NCBI GenBank assembly: GCA_965202585.1
Contig: OZ241832.1
Location: forward strand, 23,250,001 to 23,314,000
Origin: Thalia democratica
Lineage: Eukaryota
Direction: 5' to 3'
DNA: 64,000 nucleotides
Position 1 is the first letter of the stretch, and each line of letters opens with the position of its first letter. The position numbers and the translations under genes were made by a program. Shown here piece by piece: positions 1-55,081 of the stretch. Below the pieces are notes generated by a model. That model was not told where the DNA came from, did no database searches, and was given only the letters and a program-made list of their open reading frames with translations.

Positions 1-494
1 AAAGATAGAAATAGTTCTTTTTTATCATTAGTTCTATTTAATTTATTTTGCGGAGTTGGCATTTTTTAAAAAATCAATGTATTAGAAACAATTTTATTAC
101 ATTTATTTTAATAAGTTTATTCCCACCTATATAAAATTTTTGTACTAAAGTCTTTTGTAATTAATAAAAACAATCATTCTAACCATTAGCTTAAATTTAG
201 TAGCCTAATACTAAATAAAATTTTGCTTTATTATAGGTTAAAATTCAATGCTATAACTCTACAATAGTGAATGAAAGTTTTTTTAATAAGAATTAATGCG
301 GAAAATAAAAAAATTATACTATTTTTATATAAAGATAACTGGTATAAGTTCTGTTCTAGTTTTGACTTAAAACGAGAGAAAAGTGAAGATGAGAGAACAT
401 TTTTGTCACTAGTAGGCGCTCTTATTTTCTTCTAGCCGAGGTTCGTAACTATAGAATATATTTTGACACATCTTCAAATTCTTATTCATAGACA

Positions 495-660
495 TTAGCA
501 GCATCTAAGGGTAGCAAGAAAGTGGTAAAAGACGTCCCAGCTAAGGTAGCTAAAAAAAGTGCAAGTTTCATTGTAAGGAAAGCTTCAGCATTAACGTGTA
601 CAAAGTGCTCATGCAAGTACACCCTGATACTGGATTTCCAGCAAAGCTTTGAGCATCATA
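495..660 (+). pseudogene. H2B: Histone H2B pseudogene, 3'-truncated (copy A)
   Basis: Translates with frameshifts to [48 protein letters not shown] (H2[28 protein letters not shown]). ATG replaced by TTA; the match stops after SII. Confidence 0.9.
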
Positions 661-1075
661 GAGTATTTAGAAGTAGGAGTTGAAGGTTAAAAATATTTAG
701 AGCAGCACTGTGTGTTAGATTAGCAAAGATCTATTTTATTTAGTGAGTTAATGAATTTTTATTAAACATTTTTATAACTGTTTTTCATCTATATCAAATT
801 TAGGTACTAAAATTTGTTGTCAAGATAGAAAAAAATCATTTTCATCATTAGCTTTGTTTTATACAGTTTTTAATTTTAGAAAAAGTTGCCATTTTGTAAT
901 TAAACATATTAGAAATGAATATCAAAAAAAAATGTTTAATTATAACTAAAGTAATTTAAGCCATTTTTAACGAGACAACATATTTTATCACTTGTGGGCG
1001 CTCTTATTTTTATTAGCTGAGGTTCATAAATATTGGATATAGTGAGACACATCTTGCAAAACTTGTTCATTGACA

Positions 1076-1360
1076 ATAGCGGAATCCAAAGGTAGCAAGA
1101 AAGTAGTTAAGGACGTCCCAGCTTAAAGTAGCTAAAACAAAGTGTAGGTCTCATTGTAAGGAAAGCTTCAGTATCAACGTGTACAAGTTTTTCAAGCAAG
1201 TACACCTTAATTACTTGATTTTCAAGCGAGGCCTTGAACATCATGAAGTCTTTTGTCAACGATATGTTCGAGCGCATTGCCACCAAAGCTACACATTTGG
1301 CTCACTACAACAAGCGTTTAACCATCAGCAGCCGCAAAAATTAAATATGGTGTTCGTCTA
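1076..1360 (+). pseudogene. H2B: Histone H2B pseudogene, near-complete histone fold (copy B)
   Basis: ..[16 protein letters not shown]..(frameshifts)..[35 protein letters not shown] matches H2B [37 protein letters not shown]. Start ATG>ATA; the C-terminal helix is missing. Confidence 0.92.
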
Positions 1361-1777
1361 AGAAAGCTGTGTGGTTTTTACCTAATTCAAAAATTCAAAA
1401 CTTTAGGGTGTCAATTTTCCATTCAAAAATAGATTACTTTGATAAAATAGGATAAATAAATTTTAAGTTAAATAACCATTGATATTTGCTGTAGGCAGTT
1501 GGTAATATCAATTGTTTGTAGATGAGCTAGCGATAAGAACCTAGTTTTAATTAACTATTAAGGGTAGATTTTTATTTATTTAAAGTCAAGCTAGACAGAC
1601 TAAAATGTTTTAACTCTTATGCATTTTCTTTTTTTTTATTCTTAAGTTATTGTCAAACGACTAAAATCCTATCTTTTAACTGCTATTTAATTAAATTTTT
1701 TTTTATATCTAATGGTATTTAGTGTTTATTTGTATTGTAACTAGTTTAATATTTCAGATATTTAAACAAAACAAAAT

Positions 1778-3320
1778 ATGGAAAACATTTTGAGACTAAC
1801 CATTGGAAAGAATAACATTGATGAAGGTTTATTAAAGGCACTTCTAATAAGCATGTGGCCAAAAATCAAGAAAGTTCACATTACTCAAAAAGCCAGTTAT
1901 GTGGTATTCTCAACTGTTGAAGAAGCAAAACAAATGCTGGATTCCAAATCAATGAATCTTGAAGGTTACTTGGTAAAAGTAGAGAAGCTAGATAGAAAGA
2001 CAAGAAAAGATTTCAAAAGTTTAAGCAAGATTGCTTCAACTGAAAATAAATGTGACACGCTATCAAATGAACTTACCTGTTTACAAACGCAGATTGAAAC
2101 AGAGACTGTTTCTGACAAAAGTAATCAAAACAATAATAAAAAGAAACGTGCCTACTCATCGGTAAGCATTTATATTATACATCAAAGTATAACAAAGTAA
2201 GATAAAACATCATAAAATTGTTTGTTTTCTTAATTGTTTACAGTTTTTTAAGTCTATATAGTTTATGACTTTGGTTAAAATATTAGAAACAGACTAAAAA
2301 TTTATAATATTATATTTAGCATTTAGTAACGCTTAACACTGTCTTATATACAATAGAAATAGGAGTATAATTGATTTTAATTTATCAAACTATTTATCTT
2401 TATAGATATTACGAAACAATACCAAAACAATGACAACACCCAAAGTTAAGAATAGACGTATAAGTAAAAACTATACTCAGTTGTTTTCAAAATTAAAAAC
2501 AAACAAGTATCTTGAAGAAATCGAAACATCAAAATGGTTGAAATGTTTAAACAACTCAATGAAACAACATACTTGGCACCAAAATGTTATGCAAAGTTTT
2601 GTTAAAAAAGACCAATTTGCTTCTATTCAAATGAGTTGCAGTGATCTTTGGTCAATAGCAAACGAACAAAGCTACATAGAAGATCCTGTTTTAGACGCAG
2701 TCCTAAACGACAGTTTTAAGGTTCACAAACAAATAGGGTTTATTGAAACAAGTGTTTTTAATGCAATTGAAAACCCTTACTTCAGGGAAACGACTGTAAC
2801 TCCTTTCAAAAATGATAAAGACGCGTACGTTGCCGTCAAGAACATCAACTTTTTAAACAAAACACTTTATGTTGTGGATCCAAGGCAAAATGATAAGCAG
2901 ATAAAAACAGCAAGAAAAGTTATGAAAGCTTTTAAACAAGTGCACCATAACGAAATCAATGCAATTGAAACATCGAAATGGAACTTTATGAGCGATGAAT
3001 GGAACTTTGATTGTATTCAGCACAATATTCAGAGAGATTGTGTCAACTGCGGTATTTATTGCATGGAATACGCTTTGAAAGTTAAAAATGATTTTCCTAT
3101 TAAACCTTCGTACTTACTCGTTGAAAGTAACTTTAATGATAAAAGGCAGTTTTATACCGCAATGTTACTAAACGTTTCAAAACCAAAGCTTAAAGTCGAT
3201 AATGAAACAATAAAAGAAGAAGAAAAAGAATTTATTGAACATCCTTATTATGTGAGTAAAAGTTTAGATGAAGACGGATCAGGATTGGTTATAACATTAA
3301 AAAGAAAAAAAAAAACTTGA
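1778..3320 (+). CDS. RRM-like + Ulp1/SENP (peptidase C48) protein, copy 1, lacking the catalytic His; join(1778..2161,2406..3320), 432 aa
   Basis: Exon 1 has an RRM-like pattern (LRLTIGKN..KVHITQKASYVVFSTVEEAKQML..GYLVKVE). Donor TCG|gtaagc at 2161 and acceptor tttatag|ATA at 2406 are both phase 0 and in frame with the 2430 ORF. Exon 2 has VVDP and QRDCVNCGIYC, but a 30-nt in-frame deletion at 2845/2846 removes NNNHWIFVFL relative to copy 2. Confidence 0.75.
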
Positions 3321-6300
3321 AAAACGAAAGTAGAATCTGAAAGAGATATTTTTTAACTGGTTTATTTTATTATGTTTTATGAAACTTAATTTTTACTCAT
3401 TTTCGCTACAATAAACAAAACAATTTACCAAAATAAACAATACTTGTTTTTTTTATACTTGTATAGTTTTTTACAGTAAGAAAAATAATTGCACGACATA
3501 AAGTATTTTGTTTGGGTTTATTAAACTGGTAGTCAAATGTTTTAGAAAAAATATTAGATTAAATTTAAAACTAGAGCTATAGCTTTACTTAATCTAGCTA
3601 ACTTTTAAATGTACTAGATACCAGTAGCGACGCGGGGTAATTTTGATAGGGTCGCGGAAATACTATGCAATCAGGCAAATCCCCAAATAATTGTCTTTAG
3701 CCTTGAGTGCTTCGGTTCTCGTACTCTGCACTTAATGACTTGCTTGTTGAGAAGGACTGTTTTATAAATTTCTAGCGTAGCCTGCTTATTTGATTGCTTC
3801 CCTACGCCTGCCTGCTAAGTCGCTACTTTTTTAGACTTCGAGCTGACACTGTTTAATTTGCGTGTTGCTGCTGCTTAGCTATTAGTTTCACTCGCTCGAT
3901 CGCTTCTGTTTGAATTTAGTACATATTTTATGTATAACAGCCGAAAACTAGTTTTGAAATTCACATGGTGTTAAACTTTATCAAGAATTTCGCTGTTCAT
4001 AAGAATTCTGTCATGAAAATTACAACACGTTTAAAATGCAGCTGACACAGACTAAGCTTTTATCAAACTATAGGAAAATTTCAAATATAAAGTAAAAAAA
4101 CTTAACAAAATAGTATTTAGCAGGAAAATTAATTTTTGAGCTTTACAATAAAGTTTTTCAAAATTAGTTTGACTTGGTATATTAAAAAGCAGGTCTCTAT
4201 TTGAAGCAGAGTCCTCAAAAGCTTAAACTAAACGACTAAAACTTTTTAAAACTTTATTTATTTTTTTCAGGTGTAGTAACAGCTGCAGCGTTCTGCGCCA
4301 GGCCTCTCCATTGATTTTTTAACTAATAAATTAAAAACACTTGATTATGCTTCGTAAATTAATAATACTTTTATTTTTTTTAATGTTAAAAAATATCTAG
4401 AAATCCTTAGTCAAATAACTATGAATTTATTTTAGTTTATCAAAATTAATACTTAAATAGTGACTTAATACTCATTTACTTTTTATACTGGTTTCAAATG
4501 TCAAACCTCACTTTTAAAAGGGAACGGGTCAGAAAAGCACGTGCGTCATTTTAGTAAGGGGTGATTTTTTTGCACGAATTTACTTTAGCACAAAGTGACA
4601 CTTAAGTATGGAGTAACACTTTAGCACAAAAAAAAACTTTAGCACGGCTGTCTTTCTTCAATAATGCATAACATTTTTACTGTTTTTTTTAAATCTAAAA
4701 ACATATCATGCAGTATGTAGACTAAAAGTTAAACCACTTTAAATATGTTACAAGTTAAATCTTTAACTGGAAATTCATGTTTAATTGAAAGTACAACATT
4801 TTATTTAAAAGCAAACCGTATTTTTTTTAATAAAAATATAAGACTAAATTAAAAGTTATACTAAATCAATTTACACTAGATTTTCTGGAGCTAAGAATAA
4901 ACAGCAAAAAAAAAGTCTTAGGCGTTTGTAAGGTAAATTTGAAACTTATACTAGATATTATGGTAAAAAGTAGGAAAATAGGGGTCCACAAACTGTAAAA
5001 GGGGAAGCCACTTGGCCACAATTTAAAACTTATTCTAGATATTTCGGAGTTAATGACAAGATGCAAAAGAATATTCGTAGGCGTTTTTAATGGTATTTTA
5101 AAAACTTGTACTAGATATCAAGTAAAAATACTATAAAATTTAGTAGGTCACAAGGAAATAATTTAAAACTTACACTAGATACTTTAGAGTTGATGATGAA
5201 CACAACAAAATGTCTTAAGTGATTTTAGTAATAGTTTTTGGAGAATTTTTTTTTGATGCGGCTATAGCTTTTTAGTTTTATTAAAGGCCATATCAAAATA
5301 AGTTTAGGACAACCTAGTTTAGGGTAAAAATTTGTTCACATAGTTATACCTACAAAGTGCTAACAACATTTAGCTTTTTTTTTGATAAATTTAACAAATT
5401 TTTTGTTTACTGTCTTAAAATGTTTTGCATTAGAGCTAAAGTTAAAAAAAAACTGTAAGCTTGTGAATAAAAACAAGCATGCAAACATAAAAAATGATTA
5501 TTTTCAAGTATTTATAAATAAAAGTCTAAAAGTCGCTTTAAACATACTTTTAAAGCTGAAAACCACGTTGCAGATCAGGAATATTTTCAAAACAGGAAGT
5601 CTAATAAACATGACCATGTGTTGATACTATTATATAAAACTTGTTTAGCATTAGTTAAAAAATAATAATTAATAAGTTTTACAATCTAATAAACGAATGC
5701 AGCATTTAAAAAACAGATAAAATTTATAACTGTAACCTACAAAAATGGTGTTTTTTTACCTGGCAAACACCAATTATAACCAACATTGAACTGTAGTTAT
5801 GGTTATAATGTATATTAAACCTATAAAATAACCCGTATTAAATAAATACTAAAAGTAAGCTAGCTAATACTGATATATAACAATACTTAAGGCTACTCTA
5901 TATAAAACTGTGCATAACATAAATGAACACAGTTTATATATAAAGAACATCATACTTCAGAAAACACTTTAGATGTGGTAAATATATTTAAACAAAAATT
6001 TTATCTAACAGAAATACACTTTAAGATGATTTAATTAAGATGTTTTATCCTGAGCAGGCTGGGACTATAAAAAATGTCACTGCCCAAAATCAGTATAAAT
6101 ATAGCTGAATATAGCATAAAAAACATTTCATCAGATTCGTTTCTTCTTAATGTAACTCTATTCTACATAATTTAGTATTAAATTAAATGGTAGAGCAGTG
6201 TAGCTGGTATTTCATTGCAAATTTCTACCTATACCAAACTCAAGTACTAAAATCTGATGTAAAGACTAAAAAAGTTCATTTAAATCATCAGCTTTATTTT

Positions 6301-6596
6301 TGTAGTCTAATGCTTGTTAAAAATTTGCCTTATTATAAGTAAAATCAATGCTATAAATATACAATAATGAATAAAACTTTTTTTTCTAATAAAAACTAAA
6401 GAGGAAAACAAAATCTTACACTATTTTTATTTTAAGATAGTTTGAGTCAGTTCTTTTCTTGTTCTAAATTAAAAAGAGAGAGAAAAGAAGATGAGAGAAC
6501 ATTTTGATCACTAGTTGGTGCTCTTATTTTCTTCTAGCCGAGGATCGTAACTTTAGGATATAATAAGACACATCTTCAAAATGTTATTCATAGACA

Positions 6597-6763
6597 GTGG
6601 CAGCATCCAAAGATAGCTTGAAAGTAGTAAAGGACGTCCCAGCTAAGGTAGCTAAAGAAAAGTCCAGGTTTCATTAAAGGAAAGCTTTAGCATCAACGTG
6701 TACAAAGTACTCAAGCAAGTACACCCTGATACTGGAATCCTCAGCAAAGCTATAAACATCATA
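6597..6763 (+). pseudogene. H2B: Histone H2B pseudogene, 3'-truncated (copy C)
   Basis: [29 protein letters not shown] preceded by the same [13 protein letters not shown] tail; ATG>GTG. Confidence 0.9.
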
Positions 6764-7409
6764 GATTATTCAGAGGTAGGAGCTGATATTAATGTAAAGC
6801 AGAATTGTGTTTATTTAGCAAAGATTTTCTTTATTTAGAAAGTTTATGAATTTTTATTAAATACTTTTATAATAGTTTTACACCTGTATTAAATTTAGGT
6901 ACTAACATCTTTTGTAAAGATAGAAAAAGTTCATTTTCATCATTAGTTCTATTTTATTTATTTTGCGGAGTTGGCACTTTTTTTTTAAATCAATATATTA
7001 GAAACAATTTTATTACATTTATTTTAATAAGTTTATTCCAACCTATATAAAATTTTTGTACTAAAGTCTTTTCTAATTAATAAGAAAGTTCATTCTTACC
7101 ATTAGTTTAAATTTAGTAGCCTAATACTTAATAAAATTTTGCTTTATTATAGGGTAAAATTCAATGCTATAAATTTACAATAGTGAATGAAAATATTTTA
7201 ATAAGAATTAATGTGGAAAGTAAAAAAATTACACTATTTTTATATAAAGCTAACTGGTATAAGTTCTGTTCTAGTTTTGACTTAAAACGAGAGAAAAGTG
7301 AAGATGAGAGAACATTTTTGTCACTAGTAGGCGCTCTTATTTTCTTCTAGCCGAGGTTCGTAACTATAGAATATATTTTGACACATCTTCAAATTCTTAT
7401 TCATAGACA

Positions 7410-7575
7410 TTAGCAGCATCTAAGGGTAGCAAGAAAGTGGTAAAGGACGTCCCAGCTAAGGTAGCTAAATAAAGAGCAGGTTTCATTGTAAGGAAAGCTT
7501 CAGCATTAACGTGTACAAAGTGCTCATGCAAGTACACCCTGATACTGGATTTCCAGCAAAGCTTTGAGCATCATA
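7410..7575 (+). pseudogene. H2B: Histone H2B pseudogene, 3'-truncated (copy A')
   Basis: Near-identical to 495-660. Confidence 0.9.
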
Positions 7576-7989
7576 GAGTATTTAGAAGTAGGAGCTGAAG
7601 GTTAAAAACATTTAGAGCAGCACTGTGTGTTAGATTAGCAAAGATCTATTTTATTTAGTGAGTTAATGAGTTTTTATTAAACATTTTTAAAACTGTTTTT
7701 CATCTATCTCAAATTTAGGTACTAAAATTTGTTGTCAAGATAGAAAAAAAATCATTTTCATCATTAGCTTTGTTTTATACAGTTTTTAATTTTAGAAAAA
7801 GTTGCCATTTTGTAATTAAACATATTACAATGAATATCAAAAAAAAGTTTAATTATAACTAAAGTAATTTAAGCCATTTTTTAACGAGATAACATATTTT
7901 ATCACTTGTGGGCGCTCTTATTTTTATTAGCTGAGGTTCGTAAACATTGGATATAGTGAGACACATCTTGCAAAACTTATTCATTGACA

Positions 7990-8274
7990 ATGGCAGCATC
8001 CAAAGGTATCAAGAAAGTAGTTAAGGACGTCCCAGCTTAAGGTAGCTAAAACAAAGTGTAGGTCTCATTGTAAGGAAAGCTTCAGTATCAACGTGTACAA
8101 GTTTTTCAAGCAAGTACACCTTAATTACTTGATTTTCAAGCGAGGCCTTGAACATCATGAAGTCTTTTGTCAACGATATGTTCGAGCGCATTGCCACCAA
8201 AGCTACACACTTGGCTCACTACAACAAGCGTTTAACCACCAGCAGTCGCAAAAATTAAATATGGTGTTCGTCTA
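7990..8274 (+). pseudogene. H2B: Histone H2B pseudogene, near-complete histone fold (copy B')
   Basis: Retains ATG (MAASKGIKKVVKDVPA*), then a stop and frameshifts; downstream [29 protein letters not shown]. Confidence 0.92.
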
Positions 8275-8691
8275 AGAAAGCTGTGTGGTTTTTACCTAAT
8301 TCAAAAATTCAAAACTTTAGGGTGTCAATTTTCCATTTAAAAATAGACTACTTTGATAAAATAGGATAAATGAATTTTAAGTTAAATAACCATTGATATT
8401 TGCTGTAGGCAGTTGGTAATATCAATTGTTTGTAGATGAGCTAGCAATAAGAACCTAGTTTTAATTAACTAGTAAGGGTAGATTTTTATTTATTTAAAGT
8501 CAAGCTAGACAGACTAAAATGTTTTAGCTCTTATGCATTTTCTTTTTTTTTATTCTTAAGTTATTGTCAAACGACTAAAATCCTATGTTTTAACTGCTAT
8601 TTAATTAAATTTTCTTCTATATCTTGTTGTATTTAGTGTTTATTTGTATTGTAACTAGTTTAATATTTCAGATACTTAAACAAAACAAAAT

Positions 8692-9074
8692 ATGGAAAAC
8701 GTTTTGAGACTAATCATTTGAAAGAATAACATTGATGAAGGTTTATTAAAGGCACTTCTAATAAGCATGTGGCCAAAAATCGAGAAAGTTCACATTACTC
8801 AAAAAGCCAGTTATGTGGTATTCTCAACTGTTGAAGAAGCAAAACAAATGCTGGATTCCAAATCAATGAATCTTGAAGGTTACTTGGTAAAAGTAGAGAA
8901 GCTAGATAGAAAGACAAGAAAAGATTTCAAAAGTTTAAGCAAGATTGCTTCAACTGAAAATAAATGTGACACGCTATCAAATGAAATTACCTGTTTACAA
9001 ACGCAGATTGAAACAGAGACTGTTCCTGACAAAAGTCATCAACACAACAATAAGAAAAACGTGCCTACTCATCG
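8692..9074 (+). pseudogene. Disrupted RRM-like exon of the RRM-Ulp1 gene, copy 2
   Basis: Homologous to 1778-2161, but codon 10 is TGA (8719-8721; GGA in copy 1) and a 1-nt deletion in the A-run before the donor (9074) shifts the frame. Confidence 0.8.
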
Positions 9075-9341
9075 GTAAGCATTTATATGATACATCAAAG
9101 TATAACAAAGTAAGATAAAACATCATAAAATTGTTTGTTTTCTTAATTATTTACAGTTTTTTAAGTCTATATAGTTTATGACTTTGGTTAAAATATTAGA
9201 AACAGACTAAAAATTTATAATATTATACTAGCATTTAGTAACGCTTAACACTGTCTTATATACAATAGAAATAGGAGTATAATTGATTTTTATTTGTCAA
9301 ACTATTTATCTTTATAGATATTACGAAACAATACCAAAACA

Positions 9342-10271
9342 ATGACAACACCCAAAGTTAAGAATAGACGTATTAGTAAAAACTATACTCAGTTGTTTTC
9401 AAAATTAAAAACAAGCAAGTATCTTGAAGAAATCGAAACATCAAAATGGTTGAAATTTTTAAACAACTCAATGAAACAACATACTTGGCACCAAAATGTT
9501 ATGCAAAGTTTTGTTAAAAAAGACCAATTTGCTTCGATTCAAATGAGTTGCAGTGATCTTTGGTCAATAGCAAACGAACAACGCTACATAGAAGATCCAG
9601 TTTTAGACGCAGTCCTAAACGACAGTTTTAAGGATCACAAACAAATAGGGTTTATTGAAACAAGTGTTTTTAATGCAATTGAAAACCCTTACTTCAGTGA
9701 AAAGACTGTGAATCCTTTCAAAAATGATAAAGACGCGTACGTTGCCGTCAAGAACATAAACAACAATCACTGGATATTTGTTTTCCTCAACTTTTTAAAC
9801 AAAACACTTTATGTTGTGGATCCAAGGCGGAGTGATGAGCAGATAGAAACAGCAAGAAAAGTTATGAAAGCTTTTAAACAAGTGCACCATAACGAAATCA
9901 ATGCAAGTGAAACATCGAAATGGAACTTTATGAGCGATGAATGGAACTTTGATTGTATTCAGCACAATATTCAGAGAGATTGTGTCAACTGCGGTATTTA
10001 TTGCATAGAATACGCTTTGAAAGTTAAAAATGATTTTCCTATTAAACCTTCGTACTTACTCGTTGAAAGTAACTTTAATGATAAAAGGCAGTTTTATACC
10101 GCAATGTTACTAAACGTTTCAAAACCAAAGCTTAAAGTCGATAATGAAACAATAAAAGAAGAAGAAAAAGAATTTATTGAACATCCTTATTATGTGAGTA
10201 AAATTTTAGATGAAGACGGATCAGGATTGGTTATAACATTAAGAAGAAAAAAACTTGAAAAACAAAAGTAG
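9342..10271 (+). CDS. Ulp1/SENP-family cysteine protease (peptidase C48) with intact catalytic residues, 309 aa
   Basis: NNNHWIFVFL (His 9768-9770), VVDP (Asp 9819-9821) and QRDCVNCGIYC (Gln 9972-9974, Cys 9990-9992) give the His-Asp-Gln-Cys order of C48 proteases. The ORF is uninterrupted from ATG 9342. Confidence 0.8.
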   Translation: MTTPKVKNRRISKNYTQLFSKLKTSKYLEEIETSKWLKFLNNSMKQHTWHQNVMQSFVKKDQFASIQMSCSDLWSIANEQRYIEDPVLDAVLNDSFKDHKQIGFIETSVFNAIENPYFSEKTVNPFKNDKDAYVAVKNINNNHWIFVFLNFLNKTLYVVDPRRSDEQIETARKVMKAFKQVHHNEINASETSKWNFMSDEWNFDCIQHNIQRDCVNCGIYCIEYALKVKNDFPIKPSYLLVESNFNDKRQFYTAMLLNVSKPKLKVDNETIKEEEKEFIEHPYYVSKILDEDGSGLVITLRRKKLEKQK

Positions 10272-10581
10272 AATCTGAAAGAGATAATTTTTAACTGGTT
10301 TATTTTATTATGTTTTATGAAACTTAATTTTTACTCATTTTCGCTACAATAAACAAAACAATTTACTAAAATAAACAATACTTGTTTTTTTATACTTGTA
10401 TAGTTTTTTACAGTAAGACAAAGAGTTGCACGACATAAAGTATTTTGTTTGGGTTTATTAAACGGGTAGTCAAATGTTTTAGAAAAAAATAAGATTAAAC
10501 TTTATTCTAGAGCTATAGCTATACTTAAACTAGCTAACTTTTAAATGTACTAGATACCTGTAGCGACGCGGGGTAGTTTTG

Positions 10582-11460
10582 ATAGGGTCGAGGAAATACT
10601 ATCAAAGAAAAGTTATAACAAGAGCTAGAAGTTCAACAGCTTTTAAAATGATTGGCCCTCAGAATTGTCTAGTATACTTAAAACTTCCTTACCTTGGAAA
10701 TATTTCTGAGAGGTTTTCTAAAAAAATTTCAGATGAAATAAGCCAAGTTTTCAGCTTTGTTCATTTAAGAACAGTTTTGTATACTCATCGACCTCTAAAT
10801 GGAATTTACAAAGATGTTTCTCCTACCCATGAAAAAAGTAACATCATCTTTAAATTTAGTTGTCACTGTGGTAGTGACTAAGTGGGAAAAAAATCTCAAA
10901 GGTTTCATGTAAGAATCGATCAACATGTTCCGAAAGTCTTGAAAAAGTGGTTTGATGGCCGTCTGAGAAACCAACTAAAAACTACTTCTCGGCGATTGGG
11001 CAAAATTTGTTGGACAATCCTGAGTGTGTTAAAAATTATAAAAAGGACAATTTTTCAGTCTTAGTGAGAGCGGAGAACTCTTTGCAATTGCATTTTCTGG
11101 AAGCCTTATGTATTCAATCTTTAAGGCCCAGTTTATGTAAGCAGAAAAAGTTCGTTTACCAAACTAGACTTTTTAAATCCTTATATTAGTAATTTTAAAG
11201 TAATTAGTCTCTTGTTAAACTTTATATTTAAGCATAGTTTTAATCTAAAACTTTTATCGCTTCTTTATTTAGATTGTTTTAATTCTACTGAGTTTTATTA
11301 GTATACTAAATTTGTTTAGCATTATCACTTATTTAATTTTTAACATTTAATTATTACGTCATTCTATATCTTAAAACTTTAAACTGCATTATAATTTATT
11401 TCAATTTTTATTCATTCCAATTTAGTAGGAAACTATTTCTGACGAGTCCTACTTGAAAGT
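10582..11460 (+). mobile_element. 5'-truncated Penelope-like retroelement (linker + GIY-YIG endonuclease, decayed 3' hammerhead motif)
   Basis: VYLKLPYLG..KDVSPTHEKSNIIFKFSCHCGSD*VGKKSQRFHVRIDQHVP..HLLDNPEC..FLEALCIQSLRPSLCKQK is the PLE GIY-YIG domain with a stop and a frameshift. CTGACGAGTCC..GAAA at 11439-11458. Confidence 0.85.
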
Positions 11461-13150
11461 ACTTAAATAAATTTAAAGAAAATGAAATGTATTTTGTTAT
11501 ATATTTTTAGTAAGTTACTGAACAAAAAATAATGTTTTAAACTTATGCAAAAAATTGTTTTCTAAAAATTCCTACGTATTGCTTGTAAGATACTGCTGGC
11601 TCCTGTTGTATTATTTTTTATTAATTTTTGAAACCTAATATTTAGTCCAAATAATTCGACGTATTTAAAAGTTTAGATTTTAAATTCATCAGCAGACAAT
11701 ATCTTAGAAAAGTTTATTTTATTATTTATTTGTTAGTAAAATTTGAAGTCAGAAAGCCATATCTAAAAAAATAAACAATAAAATAAACTTTAAAAAAGTA
11801 TAGAAGTAATAGTTTTTTAAGAAAATAAAGTTAAGTAGTAGCTTTTAAAAAGCTTATAGTGTTTCAATATCTTTAGTGTATAAAAATTCGTCAAAATAAA
11901 AAACTCTAGTTGTATTTGATATTAAAATTAAATATAAAAGTCAAAGAAACAAAAGCACTCAATAGCTTTAAAATAACTAAGTAACTTACATAGTAATTAA
12001 TGACTAACTAAAATATTTACAGTTTTGTTTTCAAGTTGACTCATATAATTTCTAAAAATTTCTAAAACAAAACAAAAACTAAATTATCACGGTATTGCGT
12101 TTTATAATGGTAAAGAAAAAAAAGTTTTGCAAAATGGTTTAAATTTCAGTTATTTTACAATAAACAACTCAAAGTCAAATAAGAAGAAGTTATTAGTTCA
12201 AATTTTAATTATAAAATTTAAGGAATCTTATTAAATAACATAATCTGTTATAAATTTTAAAAAAGTTTTGGTTTAAAAAAATTTAAGCTAGTAGAATATA
12301 TTCAAGTATACATTTAGGCAACTGTCTGTCATTACTATTTAGTATTGCTTATTGAAGTGATTTTTCAAGGACAAAGTTAGTGAAGAAGTAAATACTACCT
12401 AGTCTATTTAGTGTAATCTAACAAAATTATAATTTTTTATAATAATATTTTAAACCTCCGGACCTATAATTTTGAGTGTTTTTTTTTTTGTCGTTTAGTA
12501 AATCAATATAATATTAATGCATTGTTTAATAGCTTGTATAAATTGTTTAAAGCTCATACATAGAGTTATTCTCTTATTGTTACTACCGGTTGCTTATTTT
12601 CAAACTCATTATTAGTGTTTATTTAATGGGATTTCAAAACTATATTAAATTTTTGGTAAGTTTTTAGTATAACCTTGTAAATATATAAGTTAAAGTAACT
12701 AAATATTCTAAACTAAGTAAGTGAACAAATAAGTTTTTCTTTAAAATAAGAATTACGATACTATCCAACTAAGTCTTTTTACATTAGCCAGTATAAAGGA
12801 AGCTTAATGTGATTAATACGAATATAAATATATTTGACGGAACTATCGACAATTAAATTATTTAATAGAAAATATTTGGTCAATGGGAGTTTTAAATTAA
12901 GTAGAGCCTACAAATAAAAAAGATAAAACTAACCTACAAACGTTATTTTTTCAACAGTTAAACAAATGTAAACACTATAATGTATTATTTTTAGATTTTT
13001 TGTCTAAAATATAATCTTAAGCGTACAATCAAGTTAGATTTCTATTTCAATTGAATGAATTTTCGGTTAAATACAAATATAAAGTTTTAATAAATCAATC
13101 TAAATAAAAATTTAGAAAAAGATGCTAAGTTCTATATATTCTTTGCTAAT

Positions 13151-13156
13151 TTTATT
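13151..13156 (-). promoter_or_regulatory. Candidate polyadenylation signal of the 141-aa gene
   Basis: AATAAA on the minus strand ~160 nt downstream of the stop at 13314; weak evidence in AT-rich DNA. Confidence 0.35.
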
Positions 13157-13313
13157 CACGAACAAAAGTAAGTACAGTAGTACAAAGACCGATTTATAAT
13201 AGATTTCAACAAATTCACATCTCAACAAAGCAGATTGAAACAGAACAAAAGAAAGCGCTTAAACAAAACTTCATACTAGTTACCAAAAACGCGTTCACAG
13301 ACTTAACACCAGT

Positions 13314-13739
13314 TTAATTCAGATCAAAAGTTTCAAGCAGCATCTTCAGCACGACGTCCCAGCTCAGCTCCCCGTCATGCGCCTTGAACTTGCTGTGAAA
13401 CAAATTCTGTTTGAAACAGAAGTGGGTGCAAACTTTTTTCGCGTACTCCGTCAGCAGTGAGTCCAGTTCTGCGGTCCGCTTTTCCGTGCCTGGCCATCCC
13501 AGCACGTCACCGTACTCTCCTGAGTAGCCGACCGCGTCAGCGAACCTTCCGAAGTCCGAATCGAAGAGCGCCAGAGCGTGTTGGCGGGCTTCGTCGAACT
13601 CTGACTTCACGTTGGCCCAGGTCGGTTGCTTTTGTTCGGAGGCCTTGGTCAAGCGGTTGAAGACACGCTTTTCAAACTCGTCGCAGGCCTCTTTGAGCTT
13701 ACCAGCGAGATATGCATCCATTTTCATCAACTTGTTCAT
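13314..13739 (-). CDS. Single-exon 141-aa helical protein resembling the GBP/atlastin C-terminal helical domain
   Basis: Clean ATG..TAA ORF, GC-rich relative to its flanks (38/60 GC at 13441-13500), with an in-frame stop upstream of the ATG. KEACDEFEKRV..PTWANV..EARQHALALF..ELDSLL..HFCFKQN aligns by eye to human GBP1 QKAIAHYEQQM..LPT..EREAIEVF..ELAAQL..DFCKQN. Coding status is likely; the family call is tentative. Confidence 0.65.
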   Translation of the reverse strand: MNKLMKMDAYLAGKLKEACDEFEKRVFNRLTKASEQKQPTWANVKSEFDEARQHALALFDSDFGRFADAVGYSGEYGDVLGWPGTEKRTAELDSLLTEYAKKVCTHFCFKQNLFHSKFKAHDGELSWDVVLKMLLETFDLN

Positions 13740-14710
13740 TGGAAGCGTTTAACAACAGTAAAATGCTTGTTAAAAATTGTTTGTTAAATATCATTTGAAA
13801 TTTGTACCAAAATAAAAACTAACAATTATTGTAAGCATGAGACTAAAAATGAAATGATTCAGTATTTGTGTATTAATATATAGTATACTGTTTAAGTCAA
13901 TATAAAGTTACTACATATTTTAACTCACATTTTAAAGATACAATTTAAACTAATATCAAACATTAATTAACCTAAAAATAATAATTTAATCACACTAAAA
14001 ACACACAACAAAAACTAAGTTTAAAAAGTTGCCAGTCTACACAATTAGCTAGTTTTTATTTTGTTATTCGATGAAAAGACTACATTTAGTATTTTTTTTT
14101 TGTTTTATTAAACGTGCATATAACTTTCGCCCAACCAGTATTTTAAAAACTGATAAAAATTTCTTGCCATTATACTTTAAAGAAACTTTTTTTCACAAAC
14201 TTGATATTTAAAAAATATAAATAAAACTGATGCGAATAATTTTTAATCAACAAGAATAAATTTTTAAAAACTAAATAATCTTTTAAAAGAGATAAGACTA
14301 ATGCAAACTAAGAAACAGCATACAATGGTATTTAGACTGTTGTTTTAGAGACTAAGGTGATTCGGTACTAATAATATTTCAGAATACAACTACATTTAAC
14401 CTTAAATTATTGAATATAATGTTGTAGTAACAAAAAATTTCCTGACAGTTAAAGTTTAGAAGCCGTCATTTTACTTCACTCTAGCTTTTGTTTTTAGCAG
14501 GGCTTTTCAAGTTCGTCTAATTAGTCGATGAAATCGCCCATTTAAAAAACTTCATTTTTAATCGAATGTATACTTAACTATATATTTCAAAATCTTTATA
14601 TAAATATTTAGCATTATCTTTTTTTTTTATTACTTTAAAAACACACAATCAAAATTAAGTTTACTGAATTTCGTTCGTGATTTAAAAAAAGACAAAATCT
14701 GATGTTTTAC

Positions 14711-14737
14711 TATATATATATAAATATATATATATAT
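14711..14737. repeat. (TA)n microsatellite next to a short hairpin
   Basis: TA run followed by the ACGGGTA-A-TACCCGT inverted repeat at ~14741-14755. Confidence 0.8.
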
Positions 14738-15810
14738 AAACACGGGTAATACCCGTTTACTTAGAAAAACCGTTGATCTAGTGACCAGGACTTCATAAAT
14801 AAACTGCCAACAATACAGTTTAAAATATAAAGCATTCACCCATAATGATCGAACTTAAATTTAACTTATGTTTTAAATGTAACATGCTTCTTACACTTGT
14901 CTAGTTGAAATGTTATAAACGTTAGTAGTAACATTTAATTACAATGCTCAATTCTACGGCTAGTTGAAAGTTTTTGAAAATATAAGACTGAAAGCTTAAT
15001 GAAATTTAGAATAAAAAATATAAGTAAACATCAATTATTTTCTTTGAAAAAATAAAAGTTTTCTATGCAGAATACTGAATTAGAGTAAGTAATTTTATTT
15101 ACAAGAATGTGTGGATAGATAAAAGTACCTTATAAGGATTAAATTATTTAAAATAAGCTTGCAAACTTCTTTTACTAAAGTAAATTGTACGTCATTTATA
15201 GGTTAAGCTTAAAATGATAAAAATGTAAATATTTTATATAACGTCTATAAAAGTATACAAGTGTTTCTTTTAAGCTCCATACATTTTCAAACTAAATTAT
15301 ATAATTTAAGCGTTTATTTTTCTACAGTAATGCCTATTCATGGCTAAGTAAAAAACAGTTGTTTATTTTTAGTTTAAAAACAGCACTATCCGCTAAGTAG
15401 AGCATGCAAATAAAAAAATACTGTTTAAATTTCTTACTTTTCAAAGTGTAAAAGTTGTTATAATTCAAATATTTTGTTGTCCATTTTAAATGATAATGTA
15501 TTTAATTTTTAAAACCCTTAACACCAGCAAAAAAATTCATAGCAAAATCATTAAACAAAAGCAATTTTACTTATTTAACTAAAACTTAACCATTTTATAG
15601 GAAACTTTAAATTGTTATTTCCTAATATCCTACTATTTGATATTCAGTTTTTTAAAACGTTACATACTTATATGATATATAATATCTTTTTTATATCTTA
15701 CACAAACTATCAGCTGAACACTACATGATTAAGCCTAATTTAATTTAACTTTAATATAGTTATACAATGATGTTTTATAGATCAAGTAATAGTTTTATAA
15801 TGGTTTATAT

Positions 15811-15900
15811 CAGGTGTTGGCAGTGCTTCATAATTGGTAGGTCAATTTTTATAGAAAAAATTCTCGCAGGCTGCAGTACATAGAAAAAATTCTTTTTTGG
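15811..15900 (+). mobile_element. Solo hAT (Charlie-like) left-end remnant
   Basis: CAGGTGTTGGCA preceded by GTTTATAT, like the other hAT ends and targets in this window; no matching right end found. Confidence 0.35.
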
Positions 15901-16623
15901 GCAAAAGTAATTCAAAACAACTGTATTATTCAATACAAAAATAGAATTTAAAAGCATAATATGTTAAAACAAGCAATTATGATGCTAGTAATTATCGATT
16001 ATTGGAAGTTTAGCCTAATTGTCAGTTTTTACTTTGTTTTTAATATTTAAAAAGTGTGTTTTAGTTTTACAGTAACATGCTGATACAGTCTGATGATTCT
16101 TGATTTATATTACAAAAAAAAAATGTTTTTAAAATTTCATTAAAAAACCGTAGTAATAGTTTTGACATGACGTATAGAGAAATAAATTTAATGATAATTA
16201 GAAACAAATATTTAAAAAATTGTTTTGTTATTTTTGACTTAATACAGTATAGTGAACTAATAATTATAACTGTACAGAGTATACACAAAACAAATACAAT
16301 TTGTGCAAATTTGTAGTACTGACAAATGAAAGTAAAAACAAAATTGTAATACTGAAAAAATTGGTACAATTCAAAAAAATTAAAGTATTGACAATTAAAG
16401 TACTAAACAAAGATGTAATACTGAAAAAAAATACTAAAAAGTTGTAGTATGTAATGACAAACAAAGTACTGAAAATTTAGTTGCAATTTAAAAAGTATAC
16501 TAATTACAAAAAGCTCAAAATTAAAGTTATGAATTTTTTATGTTTAACAACTTCAACGTTTTAGTGGTAATAAAATGCGCATTTTCGGTAAATATGGCTA
16601 TAAATGTACACACAAAACAAGTA

Positions 16624-19600
16624 TTAAGCAAGTTTGTAGTACTGACAGATGAAGTAGGCTGACTTCTTGTAATCGTACACTGTTCCGTACTGCCAACAGT
16701 TCTTCTTGCAGCTCATCTGCATCCACAGGTAGCTCTTAGGGTATCCCTTGTACCAATCATAAATGAAGTTCTTGGACATTGGCAGGTTGTCCGCCCTGGT
16801 CCACGCGGATTGTGGGTTGTCACGTGAGAACCCGATCCACACGTAAGAGTTGGATATTCCCACGAGTCCGCACAATATCCTGTTTTTATCAGTTTGCAGA
16901 AATTTTAGTTTATTTAGTACTTTATAGAACTTTACATCTACAAATGTACTGCGATTATTTTTTATATTTTTAGAATCAGTACTTAGTTATGCACAGTACA
17001 GTAGATTCAGAAGAAAGCAAAACATTTAAAAATATTTTAATGCTACTTCAAATTAATAGAAAATTGTAAATTAGTTGAAAAAGTTCTTCAAGTATTTTGA
17101 CCTTACTAATTTCTTTTTTGCATAAGTATGTTTGAAATATCTTAAACCAATTATACAAATTGAAATTTAGATCAGTTTACGAAGTAATTTTTACAAACGT
17201 TTTTTATAGTTTTTATAAAAGCTTGGCTAAGACAGAGTTTCTAGAGACATTTATTTAAGAAGATACAAAATCTACATTAGTATAATGTCTACATTTTTAA
17301 CAAAAGAAATCTAAAAACAAGAACAAACACGGCAAAACAAAACATAAGTTAACTTACAGAAGTTGTTTTAAAGGTTAGCTAACTAAAAATGTTTAAATTT
17401 ATTCTTCACGTCATGGCGTATTTTTTGTGATTATTTAATGTTATTTTGCTGTTTGCTTTATGTTGTTCTGATGAAACACGTAATGCATAGAAACTATAGT
17501 AAACAATACGAATAGTTGTTGTTTTTTTGTATAATTATTACAATGTTTTTGTATTTTTTCCTTTAAAAGTTTTTTTATTTTTGAAAACCCGTTTTGCGTT
17601 GAAATCGATTGACTAACAATACATTTGTATATAGTATTTATAGTTTTAAATAATACGTATATTTAATTTTTTCTACTAACTTTCTATCAATCCTGGTACT
17701 TATTCCGTCCATGACCAGGTTTCCATTATACGTGGACACACAATAGGCCTGGGCTGCGTTCCAATTCGTCCATTTCTTAACAAACACGTAACTTAACTGT
17801 TCTGAAAATGATAGTTTGTACGTTTTATAATGCAGAAATAAACATAAAACTGAAAGTAAGCGTTGTAAAATGTTTTTTAAAATGTAACTAAAAAAAAATT
17901 GTTTTTTTTTTGTCCAATAATTTTTAAACGCATGATGTTTGTTAACTTACTGTAAAGTAAAGAAAACTTAAAATATTTGAGCGTCTAACATGAAGGTTTT
18001 AATTATACTAGTTTTATCATCAAACCGCAAGCTTTTAACAGACTGATTTCGTTCCTATTGAAACTCGTCAGTCGGCAGCAAGTTTCAATGAGAACGAAAC
18101 CCGAGTCTACGTTTACCGAAAGTTTGTGGGCTGTTGATTGAATTGGAATGGTCAAACCTTTATGTAAGCCTAAGCTTGTCTCACGGAATACGAAAGTTCA
18201 GGCTTGGGCTGTTTAGACTTTCGCCAATGTTATCTTTGAAAAAGATGTAGTTAAAAACTTTAGTTTATTTAATTACTTGAATTATTTAAGTAAACAGTTT
18301 TATAGACAATTTCAATACTAAAACAAAAGCTTACAACAATTTTAAATAGTATTGTATGTTGTGTTTTAAAAAGTTTGAATTGCAAAACTAACTTGTTTGT
18401 TTAAATGAGATTTATGAGAAAACGAAACATTTTAAAGTAGAAATTATTAAATTTCTAAAGATTTTTATTTTTTCGGTGTAAAACTATATATCAACTAAAT
18501 ATTATAAATGTATAAGTGTAAGGTTTTGTTGTATACAATCAAAATGTATTTTAAATTCAAGTGTTTTTATCTAGTAAACTTTATATTATACCAATAAAGA
18601 AAAAACAGCCCCCGAAAAAACTAAACTTGTTTTGTTGCTCAATCACCAACAAACTATTCTTTTGTTAAATAAGTTTAATTATAAAACCAATTAAAACCAA
18701 TTATAAAGCAAACTAACGGCTTCTACACACAAAAGGACTTGCAATCAAACTGGGTGTTAATTGTCCAAGTAAACATTGTCTTACAGCGACACCTTGTGGT
18801 TGAAGTAAATTGTCACAAGTAAACATTACAACCTCATTGTTACGTAATAATAAGCTGGTGTTTGTACTCACATTTTCGATCACTGGTATTCTACAACCTT
18901 GAATAAAAAAACATAACATTTTTGAACAAAAAGTAGTTAAAAAACCTTACAACTAAACACCTCTTAATTTTTAATACAATTATAACAGCTCTAGTTTTAG
19001 AACGATTTTATCAGTAATTAACTTAAATATCTTTAAAAATAGACAATTCAAATAATTAATATAAATAAAGATTTTGCATTAAAAAAACAAAGATAATTAT
19101 TTGATAAAATACACAAAAAAAATTGTTGTGCTTATCTGCTTGTACAAGACGTTGCAAAATTTAAACTAGTTCTTTAAGTAAAGTAGCTTTACCGCAAATA
19201 AGCTTAAATTAAAATTTTGAAACGTTTCACTAATTTTTTACAGACATTAAAGTCTAAGCGACACATCCGTCTATCAAAGTAAATTATTTTGTTTAGCTTA
19301 TTTTTTTTTTACTTTACACAAGTCAAGTAGTTGATTTTTAATGTTAAAATTACCGTAACAACTTTTGTGTCTACTTTAACTAAAACAATATATTCAAGAA
19401 TTTATAACTTCTAAATTAATGAGAACTTTTCAAAATTTGTTGAAATTGTTCCTACCTGTTAGAAGCGCAATGATTCTTTCAAGTTGCTCGATTCTGGCTA
19501 CCAGTTGAGCTGTAGTAACTGTCGATGTACCAGGTATGATGTTATTGCTTATAACTACATCCTGACCATTTATCTGTACCGGACGTGTCAGAACGCACAT

Positions 19601-19633
19601 CAGTAGAATGAACAAAACTGCAAACTTTGTCAT
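16624..19633 (-). CDS. Secreted CCP (sushi) + C-type-lectin-like protein, paralog 1; complement(join(16624..16879,17681..17801,18718..18897,19456..19633)), 244 aa
   Basis: Four exons with GT/AG and phases 1,1,2 give an open frame: signal peptide MTKFAVLFILLMCVL, helical VARIEQLERIIALL, CCP GCRIP..FTC..QC..FVC, CTLD WTNWNAAQAYC..YVWIG..W..YFIC. Exon lengths and phases match paralog 2. Confidence 0.9.
17983..18170 (-). ncRNA. Imperfect ~190-bp palindrome with a minimal hammerhead-ribozyme-like core (intronic)
   Basis: Minus strand 18071-18041 reads CUGACGA-GUUUC-AAUA-GGAAC-GAAA-U-CA-GUC (core, 5-bp stem II, cleavage triplet GUC); stem I pairs poorly. Arms ~17983-18066 and ~18080-18170 are diverged inverted copies. 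Confidence 0.55.
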
Positions 19634-20742
19634 AATGACTTTCTATTTGTTAAATTTTAAACAAGGCTGTCAAAAAAAAATGTTTGATTAGCTTTATATT
19701 TTTGTCGGTATTTTAAATTTTGGGTCAAAGCTATAATATTGTAAAACACATGTAAATCCAAAAAAAAAAAGAAATGAACAATGTTTTAAAATATCTCGAA
19801 AAATAAAGCTTTTGTAAGAACTTTCTATGATAGTTAAGTATTTATAACAATAAGGTAAACCTAACAGCATAAAAAAATTAAAAAAGAAAGTAAAAAAATG
19901 CTTTTGATTAATCAAAATTGAAATACTTTACAAAAAACAAATTAAACCGTAAATTCTTTACGTTTATATAATATGTTTTACTTTTATTTGATAAATTAGC
20001 TAACTAATCTTTAAAAATATAACTTTTAGGTACTTTTTACAAAAATACACAATACTTTTTACTAAAATCTTTAGAAAAAAGTAATTAATGGAAAACTTAT
20101 CGAATTTAATGAATCTATAAAAGTAAATTTTTACTTTAGAAACGCTTTATATTGAATTTGATTTAATGCATTGTAAACAACAGACAAAAAAAAGTTTGTA
20201 TGTATAAGTTTTGCGATTCACGATAAAATTTATTAAGTTACATATTTTGATTACGAAATGAAAACTACTGATAATGTTTATTGTACTATTTTACTCTAAG
20301 CGTCGACAGCAGCAATCTTTTTGTTTTATATGTAAATGAGTACTTTTTTAAAACTAGTTGCACTCAACGATAGCCATTAATACCGAATGCCATTAATATT
20401 AAAAAAGACAAGAAAAATATATAGCTGTCAATTCAAAAAAAGGAAAACAATTAGTTACAATTTATAAGTTCACAACAAAGATTATAAACAAAAAAAAAAC
20501 TTTAAAGTTTTATTTGTGAAAAGTGTCATAAACTATAAGCACTTAAATCTATTCAAATGTAGTGATAAATCAGTCAACATAAAGCATAAATGTGGTATTG
20601 ACAGATTAAGTATTCAACTTTCTAATATTTATAAACAGTGCCGTTTTAAATTTACAAGTTAACAGTACAGCAAAGATTAAACCACACACTAGTACCTACC
20701 ATACTATACAATACATACACATTATCTTACAATAAATCAACA

Positions 20743-54332: not shown

Positions 54333-55081
54333 ATGATGTTTAAAACCGGGAAATCTTCTACTTTGTTTTTTATTGGCTCAATTCTGGTTTTTCTTTTGGT
54401 TGTACAGAATTACGAAGTTGAAGCTAGAAGGTTTGTTTAATTACTAACATGTACATCACAATACTTAAGCAAAAAACTAAAAAACCATGTTTCTAAAATT
54501 TATATAAATCGTACAAGATCTGAAGTTTTTATAGTCTATCCACCGATAAACCTTTAAAAAAATATTTTACTATGTTATAGTATTTTTTTAAATTGAAAAT
54601 TTTAAACCTATGTCAAAAATTATCTCTATAAATTTAAAAAATAAAGTAAAAACAGTATCAAAATAGTTAATAGAGCTATATGTTATTAGTTTTGTTTAGT
54701 TGTTTAACAACCACGAAACAATTTATATGATTCGTAGACTAACATTAAGAATGTTGAGAAACATGAGTGTTGAACAACTACGCAATGTGAAATGTGAGGG
54801 TAGAATGTTAAACTATTGCAATTACATTGGATCATGGTGCACTGCAGAAATATTAACCGTTCGCAGAAAAAGAGATACTGGTAACTTTTGTTTGTTATAT
54901 GTAAAATGATAGAAGCATTAGGTTTACTTTAAGGTACCTTGACTAAGATAATGTATAAATTTTTATTGAACGATAAAGAAGCGCTTAAAAATTTTGCTCC
55001 AACGACATGGTGTACAGAAAAAAATTTTGGTTATCGAGTCGTACACCACACTTTTTTACATTTTCAGATGAGCTAGAATAG
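54333..55081 (+). CDS. Small secreted Cys-containing prepropeptide; shortest model join(54333..54430,54738..54880,55068..55081), 84 aa
   Basis: Signal peptide MMFKTGKSSTLFFIGSILVFLLVVQNYEVEA; phase-2 intron (AG|gtttgt..cgtag|A) into RRLTLRMLRNMSVEQLRNVKCEGRMLNYCNYIGSWCTAEILTV-RRKR-DT; phase-1 intron (G|gtaact..ttttcag|AT) to DELE*; AATAAA downstream. The exon-2 acceptor and the choice of last exon are uncertain. Confidence 0.65.

Follow-up and report, generated by a model that had tools for sequence, protein, structure and literature searches.

The window analysed here is the 64,000-nucleotide stretch of the salp Thalia democratica at OZ241832.1 (C8):23250001-23314000, forward strand (assembly GCA_965202585.1, 801 Mb, 26% G+C). 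Its left end contains a direct repeat, in which window positions 1-3666 correspond to 6916-10602 at ~96% identity, with a start-to-start distance of 6.91-6.94 kb. Each copy has the same layout, all on the + strand: short H2B-derived units of ~0.8 kb, one longer H2B-derived unit, a gap of ~430 nt and a two-exon gene whose second exon resembles the Ulp1/SENP proteases. A preliminary description, made from the sequence of the window, had proposed an amplified cassette of ~6.9 kb with decayed H2B copies upstream, on the same strand, of a spliced gene. This arrangement is found in both window copies, and the genome search that the description had suggested recovered at least 29 full or near-full copies in the whole assembly (a lower bound), far more than the two in the window. 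Here it is proposed that the cassette likely represents a lineage-specific SUMO-protease-like gene with H2B relics, multiplied by nested segmental and tandem duplication. The copies form a young group, which includes the window, and an older group. Protein searches were run for each exon separately, structure prediction covered exon 2, and the exons were joined solely for frame-continuity checks and substitution counts. The canonical H2B genes, the young copies with their flanks, a paralogue cluster on C1 and an open frame at 53.3 Mb of C8 are known from their coordinates.

The two-exon gene and its protease-like domain

The exon-intron structure of the gene is kept in 14 of the 14 aligned copies, which have the donor (G followed by GTAAGC), the acceptor ((T/C)AG followed by ATATTACG), phase 0 and an open frame over the junction. 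An ATG internal to exon 2 is ATA in two copies and is therefore unlikely to be the protein start, which fits a spliced gene. Splicing and expression are predictions from the genomic sequence. A complete frame of 435 aa is present in seven of the 12 sequenced old copies, and seven of the 14 young copies have both exons without stops, as judged by coordinates. Both window copies are disabled. The in-frame deletion of 30 nt in copy 1 takes out INNNHWIFVF, including the catalytic His, and copy 2 carries a TGA at codon 10, where contigs of other copies have G at 8719, in addition to a 1-nt deletion.

The profile comparisons, the structure model and the conserved His-Asp-Gln-Cys residues support the assignment of exon 2 to family C48 of clan CE, as a divergent cysteine protease domain of Ulp1/SENP type with an apparently complete set of catalytic residues. 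Against Pfam, the exon 2 protein gave only a sub-threshold match to YopJ (PF03421, clan CE, E 0.011). Its close relatives score 18.5-19.6 bits against the PF02902 (C48) cut-off of 20.7, and the distant relatives recovered with the family profile score 28-51 bits and pass. The ten-member family profile, run against 1.8 billion representative proteins, retrieved 87 proteins; the more distant of these pass PF02902, and one is a transposon protein with MULE (Mutator-like element), PHD and C48 domains. In the 62-sequence alignment, His143, Trp144, Asp160, Gln211 and Cys217 are retained; of these, the catalytic His143, Asp160 and Cys217 and the oxyanion Gln211 vary little or not at all in the 10- and the 62-sequence alignments, and window copy 2 has all four, as do the intact copies without exception. 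Searches of PDB sequences with exon 2 alone and with the 10-sequence profile found nothing. The 62-sequence profile matches the SENP2 and Ulp1 structures (E 1e-18), a match that is partly transitive, as the second alignment included true C48 proteins. The AlphaFold2 (AF2) model built from the 62-sequence alignment has a predicted local distance difference test score (pLDDT) of 87 and a predicted template modelling score (pTM) of 0.83, and its best Foldseek matches are SENP2, SENP1 and Ulp1 (E 4e-9 to 1e-7, template modelling score (TM) normalized to the target 0.65-0.73). In a language-model Atlas, 26 of the 30 matches are C48.

Compared with the known Ulp1/SENP family (MEROPS C48, clan CE, PF02902), the C8 protein has a modelled fold like that of SENP2, SENP1 and Ulp1, with the order of His-Asp-Gln-Cys and their secondary-structure positions as expected. 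It differs from that family in falling below the Pfam threshold, in having ~130 extra helical residues before the core and in its private N-terminal exon; also, true SENPs are conserved and single, while the C8 gene exists in many copies. The close protein relatives that were found come only from this animal and from marine/Tara metagenome contigs, with 37-96% identity. The ENA metagenome contigs with relatives (up to 1.8 kb) include neither exon 1 nor H2B, no relative was found in a scan of JGI metagenomes, and the two salp genome papers have no mention of SUMO proteases or histones. More distant Ulp1-like paralogues, with 20-49% identity, are located on C1, C2, C4, C5 and C6 and are without exon 1. 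A separate large family is located at C6 74.7-81.3 Mb, where every open frame (840-913 aa) includes two distant Ulp1-like stretches (20-33% identity).

The preliminary description had called the gene a fusion of an RRM-like domain with a C48 protease. The C48 part stands on the profile, the fold and the His-Asp-Gln-Cys residues; the RRM part does not stand in the same way, and the assignment of exon 1 to an RRM domain is weak. Its Pfam matches, to DUF4283 and RRM_fung, have E values of 0.06-0.12 and are not significant. An RRM-like pattern can be seen by eye, and the best Atlas match is an RRM_1 cluster (0.80), which is taken as a lead only; a PDB sequence search with exon 1 found nothing. No homologues of exon 1 were found beyond near-identical copies, with the exception of one match at C8:53306746-53307012 (+), which has 41% identity over residues 1-87 and lies inside an open frame of 669 aa, a possible donor of the N-terminal domain. 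Because the distant paralogues and all the database relatives are without exon 1, the gene looks like a recent chimera.

The coding sequence is, judging from substitution patterns, under purifying selection, since the ratio of non-synonymous to synonymous differences (pN/pS) is 0.41 among copies that were chosen as intact (four independent pairs; counting test, Fisher p 7e-12) and since the exons are better conserved (95-97% identity) than the intron and flanks (88-91%). It can be argued instead that the whole family is neutral duplicated DNA, that is, a dying gene passively copied with its surroundings and without a working product. This alternative would account for the disabled state of both window copies and of about half of all copies and, as the copies are young (synonymous divergence, dS, of 0.02-0.24), open frames might persist by chance. 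It is nevertheless very unlikely, as it does not explain a pN/pS of this value and significance, the clearly higher conservation of exons over intron and flanks, or the retention of the catalytic residues throughout the intact copies and in relatives with as little as 20% identity. Since some half of the copies outside the window are intact and under apparent purifying selection, the product of the family as a whole is most likely a functional isopeptidase for SUMO or a ubiquitin-like protein.

Truncated H2B relics upstream of the gene

The H2B pieces are truncated pseudogene relics. Those of the window lie on the + strand (Table 1), and one more unit crosses the left window edge. In every unit of the window, three-frame translation finds the N-terminal tail, alpha1 and the beginning of alpha2 (SSKALSII) each in a frame of its own; the long unit continues beyond this point, with further stops. 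All 60 units examined, from the window and 16 other loci, are broken. The young units have two identical frameshifts, while the old units have in common an in-frame stop between MAASKGS and KVV, often with another after HPDT, and the short units have one common cut point at about residue 60 of H2B. With 2-6 units per cassette, these common lesions and the common cut point indicate a single ancestor of all the units, a copy that had been truncated before it was multiplied head to tail and before the cassette began to spread. The tail of the relic is also found in an intact 122-aa H2B frame at C2:52803085, within a canonical histone cluster (such clusters are located on C2, C7, C8, C9 and C10); its source would therefore be an ordinary H2B and not a special variant.

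These results speak against the divergent histone H2B of the preliminary description, as all the pieces are truncated relics of ordinary H2B. Nor do they support the idea of a germline chromatin module, as no H2B unit is capable of encoding a histone. The same description had noted the lack of H2A, H3 and H4 partners and of a histone 3' stem-loop, and had concluded that this is not a histone locus. Both statements agree with the present analysis: no open reading frame (ORF) for H2A, H3 or H4 was found in window 1-11500, no stem-loop (Rfam RF00032) was found in window 1-20000 even at E<=1, the H2B units are all broken, and the canonical arrays are elsewhere. Histone orphons are solitary copies that escaped from tandem histone repeats. 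Like other histone orphons and pseudogenes, the C8 fragments are H2B-only, are located away from the canonical clusters, have no partners or 3' stem-loop and carry disabling lesions; unlike them, the 5' third of the gene was multiplied to arrays of 2-6 units and then co-amplified with an unrelated gene.

The position of the array raises the question of a regulatory role. Same-strand H2B units are directly upstream of the gene in 14 of the 14 young and 10 of the 14 old copies, and between paralogous units a core of 275 bp (promoter stub and 5' coding part) has an identity of 0.83 against 0.64-0.70 in the flanks, though it is non-coding. The array could thus be a multi-start promoter or leader of the protease gene, in which every unit would have kept a short piece that is transcribed and a promoter stub with a TATA sequence, the leader being removed at an acceptor (..TTCAG followed by ATAC) 22 nt before the ATG by cis-splicing or by spliced-leader trans-splicing. 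The AG of this acceptor is kept in 13 of the 14 copies, and spliced-leader trans-splicing is known in tunicates, as reported in PMC5174732. This reading is considered unlikely. Between orthologous units of recently duplicated cassettes the divergence of the core equals that of the flanks, the last, long unit is conserved no better than the intron, the histone-promoter octamer is absent from the H2B units, and the array has been wholly lost in three to four old copies, two of which have intact frames (L011 and L012, where it is lost from 420 nt upstream of the ATG). On these grounds the array is read as a passenger, with a promoter or leader role as a possibility. Present-day constraint on the H2B core, considered as an explanation of its higher identity, was rejected, given the equal core and flank divergence of orthologous units and the intron-like conservation of the last unit.

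Two H2B-like fragments were also found on C1 (C1:31042861-31042926 and C1:31043329-31043394, both on the - strand). They are 468 bp apart, have 77% identity to the alpha1 piece and lie in open frames of 97 aa, ~4 kb from a 39%-identical Ulp1-like paralogue (C1:31038122-31038871, +) in another cluster. The neighbourhood of H2B and Ulp1-like sequences may be older than the C8 family, or the C1 case may be a coincidence.

Copy number and probable nested duplication

All the full and near-full copies lie at C8 23.25-28.4 Mb or on the unplaced contigs C34, C68 and C1229, the cassette-bearing region being 0.6% of the genome. The young group includes 14 copies with 92-97% identity at C8 23.25-24.0 Mb, with three sites having copy pairs 6.9 kb apart. 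The older group is located at C8 24.39-28.37 Mb and has 81-88% identity to the window and 88-98% among its members. Its orientation changes in blocks along C8, with + up to 24.39 Mb, - at 25.43-27.36 Mb and + at 27.68-28.37 Mb, which suggests large inversions or a palindrome-like structure in the ampliconic region.

The extent of the homology around the copies is variable. Upstream of the H2B array, at least 1 kb of homology is common to single cassette copies; downstream, it reaches from 0.2 kb to more than 4 kb among pairs of the older group, depending on the pair, and at least 7 kb (10603 to ~17570) in a subset of copies of the sub-family of the window. The 2.55-kb spacer at 3667-6220 is counted as part of the repeat, because at least seven other young copies also have it behind the gene. 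A gene for a six-cysteine secreted peptide (window 54333-55404) has been co-amplified; its copies recur every ~58-68 kb (C8 23.2-24.1 Mb), and from one cassette to the next their distance upstream stays constant at 13-16 kb. The clustered copies of high identity, the common flanks of variable length and the co-duplicated neighbour gene are the features of a segmental-duplication family. Because the ends of the flank homology vary and the neighbouring peptide gene is co-amplified, the arrangement is, as far as these alignments indicate, a nested segmental duplication, in which the 6.9-kb tandem lies within a multi-gene amplicon of ~60-65 kb.

The preliminary description had favoured a mobile or amplifying unit with cargo. 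In its explicit form, a large DNA transposon, non-autonomous and related to Mutator/Foldback, Ginger2, Zisupton or Helitron elements, would carry the cassette as cargo and make mostly short-range moves. DNA transposons of such types do carry Ulp1-like domains, the protein with MULE, PHD and C48 domains is among the distant profile matches, and the copies are numerous and in both orientations. As an account of the C8 family this is highly improbable, and the mobile unit is not borne out: all the copies are inside a single region of 5 Mb, no transposase was found, nor any further ORF of >=60 aa with a family match in window 1-11500, and dispersal to unrelated sites was not seen. The check for terminal inverted repeats found none at any boundary, only chance AT-rich matches of 18-24 nt away from the unit edges; homology between copies stops at differing points, and flanks and the neighbour gene are co-duplicated across tens of kb. 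The family also has no PHD finger, and its closest relatives are stand-alone genes. With the transposon-borne Ulp1-like proteases (plant KI-MULEs; Mutator, Foldback and Ginger2 elements with Ulp1-PHD), the C8 family has in common the protease superfamily and the single distant MULE, PHD and C48 match; it differs from them in lacking transposase, PHD finger, terminal repeats and dispersal, its copies being in one 5-Mb region with common flanks.

Table 1. Features of the repeated region, in window coordinates
Feature	Position	Strand	Remarks
U0 copy 1, tail end of short H2B-derived unit	1..42	+	starts left of the window; C8:23249240-23250042 matches unit positions 54-863 at 80%; locus L035
U1 copy 1, short H2B-derived unit	54..863	+	relic 495-646 (N-terminal tail and alpha1), cut after ...SKALSII; tail and alpha1 frames differ; ATG lost
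U2 copy 1, long H2B-derived unit	864..1400	+	relic 1076-1341 with stops and frameshifts
Exon 1 copy 1, RRM-like N-terminal domain (candidate)	1778..2161	+	128 codons, frame open
Intron copy 1	2162..2405	+	GT..AG, phase 0
Exon 2 copy 1, Ulp1/SENP-like domain	2406..3320	+	in-frame 30-nt deletion at ~2844/2845, catalytic His-Trp gone
3' flank copy 1	3321..3666	+	common to both window copies and the older family
Spacer completing the 6.9-kb tandem period	3667..6220	+	without long ORF
U0 copy 2, short H2B-derived unit	6221..6957	+	relic 6597-6763; 6221/6222 is the joint of spacer and unit array
U1 copy 2, short H2B-derived unit	6958..7779	+	relic 7410-7561
U2 copy 2, long H2B-derived unit	7780..8300	+	relic 7990-8255
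Exon 1 copy 2	8692..9074	+	disabled: TGA 8719-8721 (codon 10) and 1-nt deletion near 9050-9056
Intron copy 2	9075..9317	+	splice sites kept
Exon 2 copy 2, Ulp1/SENP-like domain	9318..10271	+	open; His143, Asp160, Gln211 and Cys217 present
3' flank copy 2	10272..10602	+	homology to copy 1 stops at 10602/10603; loose contig ends at 10602 and 10609
Downstream DNA of the larger duplicated block	10603..17570	+	85-92% to DNA behind the copies C8:23713957 and C8:23793406; begins with a 5'-truncated repeated element

Many contigs diverge before 10609, which corresponds to the start of the 5'-truncated repeated element there. Three short broken ORFs directly behind copy 2 (window 10579-11189, +) may resemble the GIY-YIG endonuclease end of Penelope-like retroelements; Pfam gave no match for them. 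Dispersed-repeat fragments occupy positions ~4520-5316 of the spacer, which match hundreds of sites on all chromosomes with 71-81% identity. At window 5891-5950 (-), Rfam gave a weak mir-4012 match (29 bits, E 0.03; gathering score 80), for which chance is the most likely explanation.

Origin and significance of the family

In the scenario proposed here, a small N-terminal domain (exon 1, possibly RRM-like) would be spliced to the divergent Ulp1/SENP-type protease domain of exon 2. Upstream of this gene, a stray, orphon-type copy of an ordinary H2B would have undergone head-to-tail multiplication of its 5' part, earlier than the spread of the cassette, and would now travel with it as non-coding DNA. 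Nested segmental and tandem duplication, most simply by unequal or non-allelic homologous recombination, would then have produced the ~30 copies in 5 Mb of one chromosome, and the sub-family of the window (C8 23.25-24.0 Mb) would correspond to a two-copy 6.9-kb tandem inside the ~60-65-kb amplicon with the six-cysteine secreted-peptide gene. The substrate of the protease and the mechanism of duplication are proposals of this scenario.

Several observations weigh against this scenario. The three sequence runs that cover the stretch look genomic, and their contigs cross the donor unspliced, with no 9074/9318 junction. At the Pfam threshold the exon 2 protein has no PF02902 match, the first AF2 model, from a shallow alignment, had a pLDDT of 37, and the match of the later profile to known structures is in part transitive, as stated above. 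The copies for the pN/pS ratio were chosen from the intact ones, and three copies lie on contigs (C34, C68 and C1229) that are unplaced on chromosomes. With a MULE-PHD-C48 protein among the distant matches, the protease domain may also be ultimately of transposon origin.

A stronger version of the same history would make the region C8 23.2-28.4 Mb a true ampliconic domain. There, dosage selection or genetic conflict, as in an arms race of drive and suppressor type, would maintain a recently assembled, chimeric SUMO-protease-like gene in a large number of active copies; the gene would combine its C48 domain with an N-terminal domain borrowed from elsewhere and with a promoter/leader array derived from H2B. 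Ampliconic gene families are known from mammalian sex-chromosome amplicons, Drosophila Stellate/Su(Ste) and Dox-type arrays. The C8 family is similar to these in having tens of copies with 81-97% identity in one region, in both orientations, in nested multi-gene units and with intact and broken members mixed. For C8, a link to a sex chromosome, to germline expression or to genetic conflict is not known, and salps are hermaphrodites. This version is regarded as quite unlikely; if it is true, no system of this kind has been described in a tunicate before.

Under the favoured reading, that of a SUMO-protease-like gene multiplied by nested segmental duplication, a false lead is removed, as both the new mobile element and the histone-variant module would drop out as readings of the cassette. 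What it would represent is a young, lineage-restricted family, in which a divergent Ulp1/SENP-type protease with a new first exon underwent a segmental amplification of ~30-fold together with histone pseudogene debris. The wider importance of the family hinges on its expression and enzyme activity. For tunicate genomics, the locus points to an ampliconic region of 5 Mb whose genes annotation pipelines probably collapse or mis-call, and it offers a clean set of intact and broken paralogues for studies of gene birth, dosage and decay.

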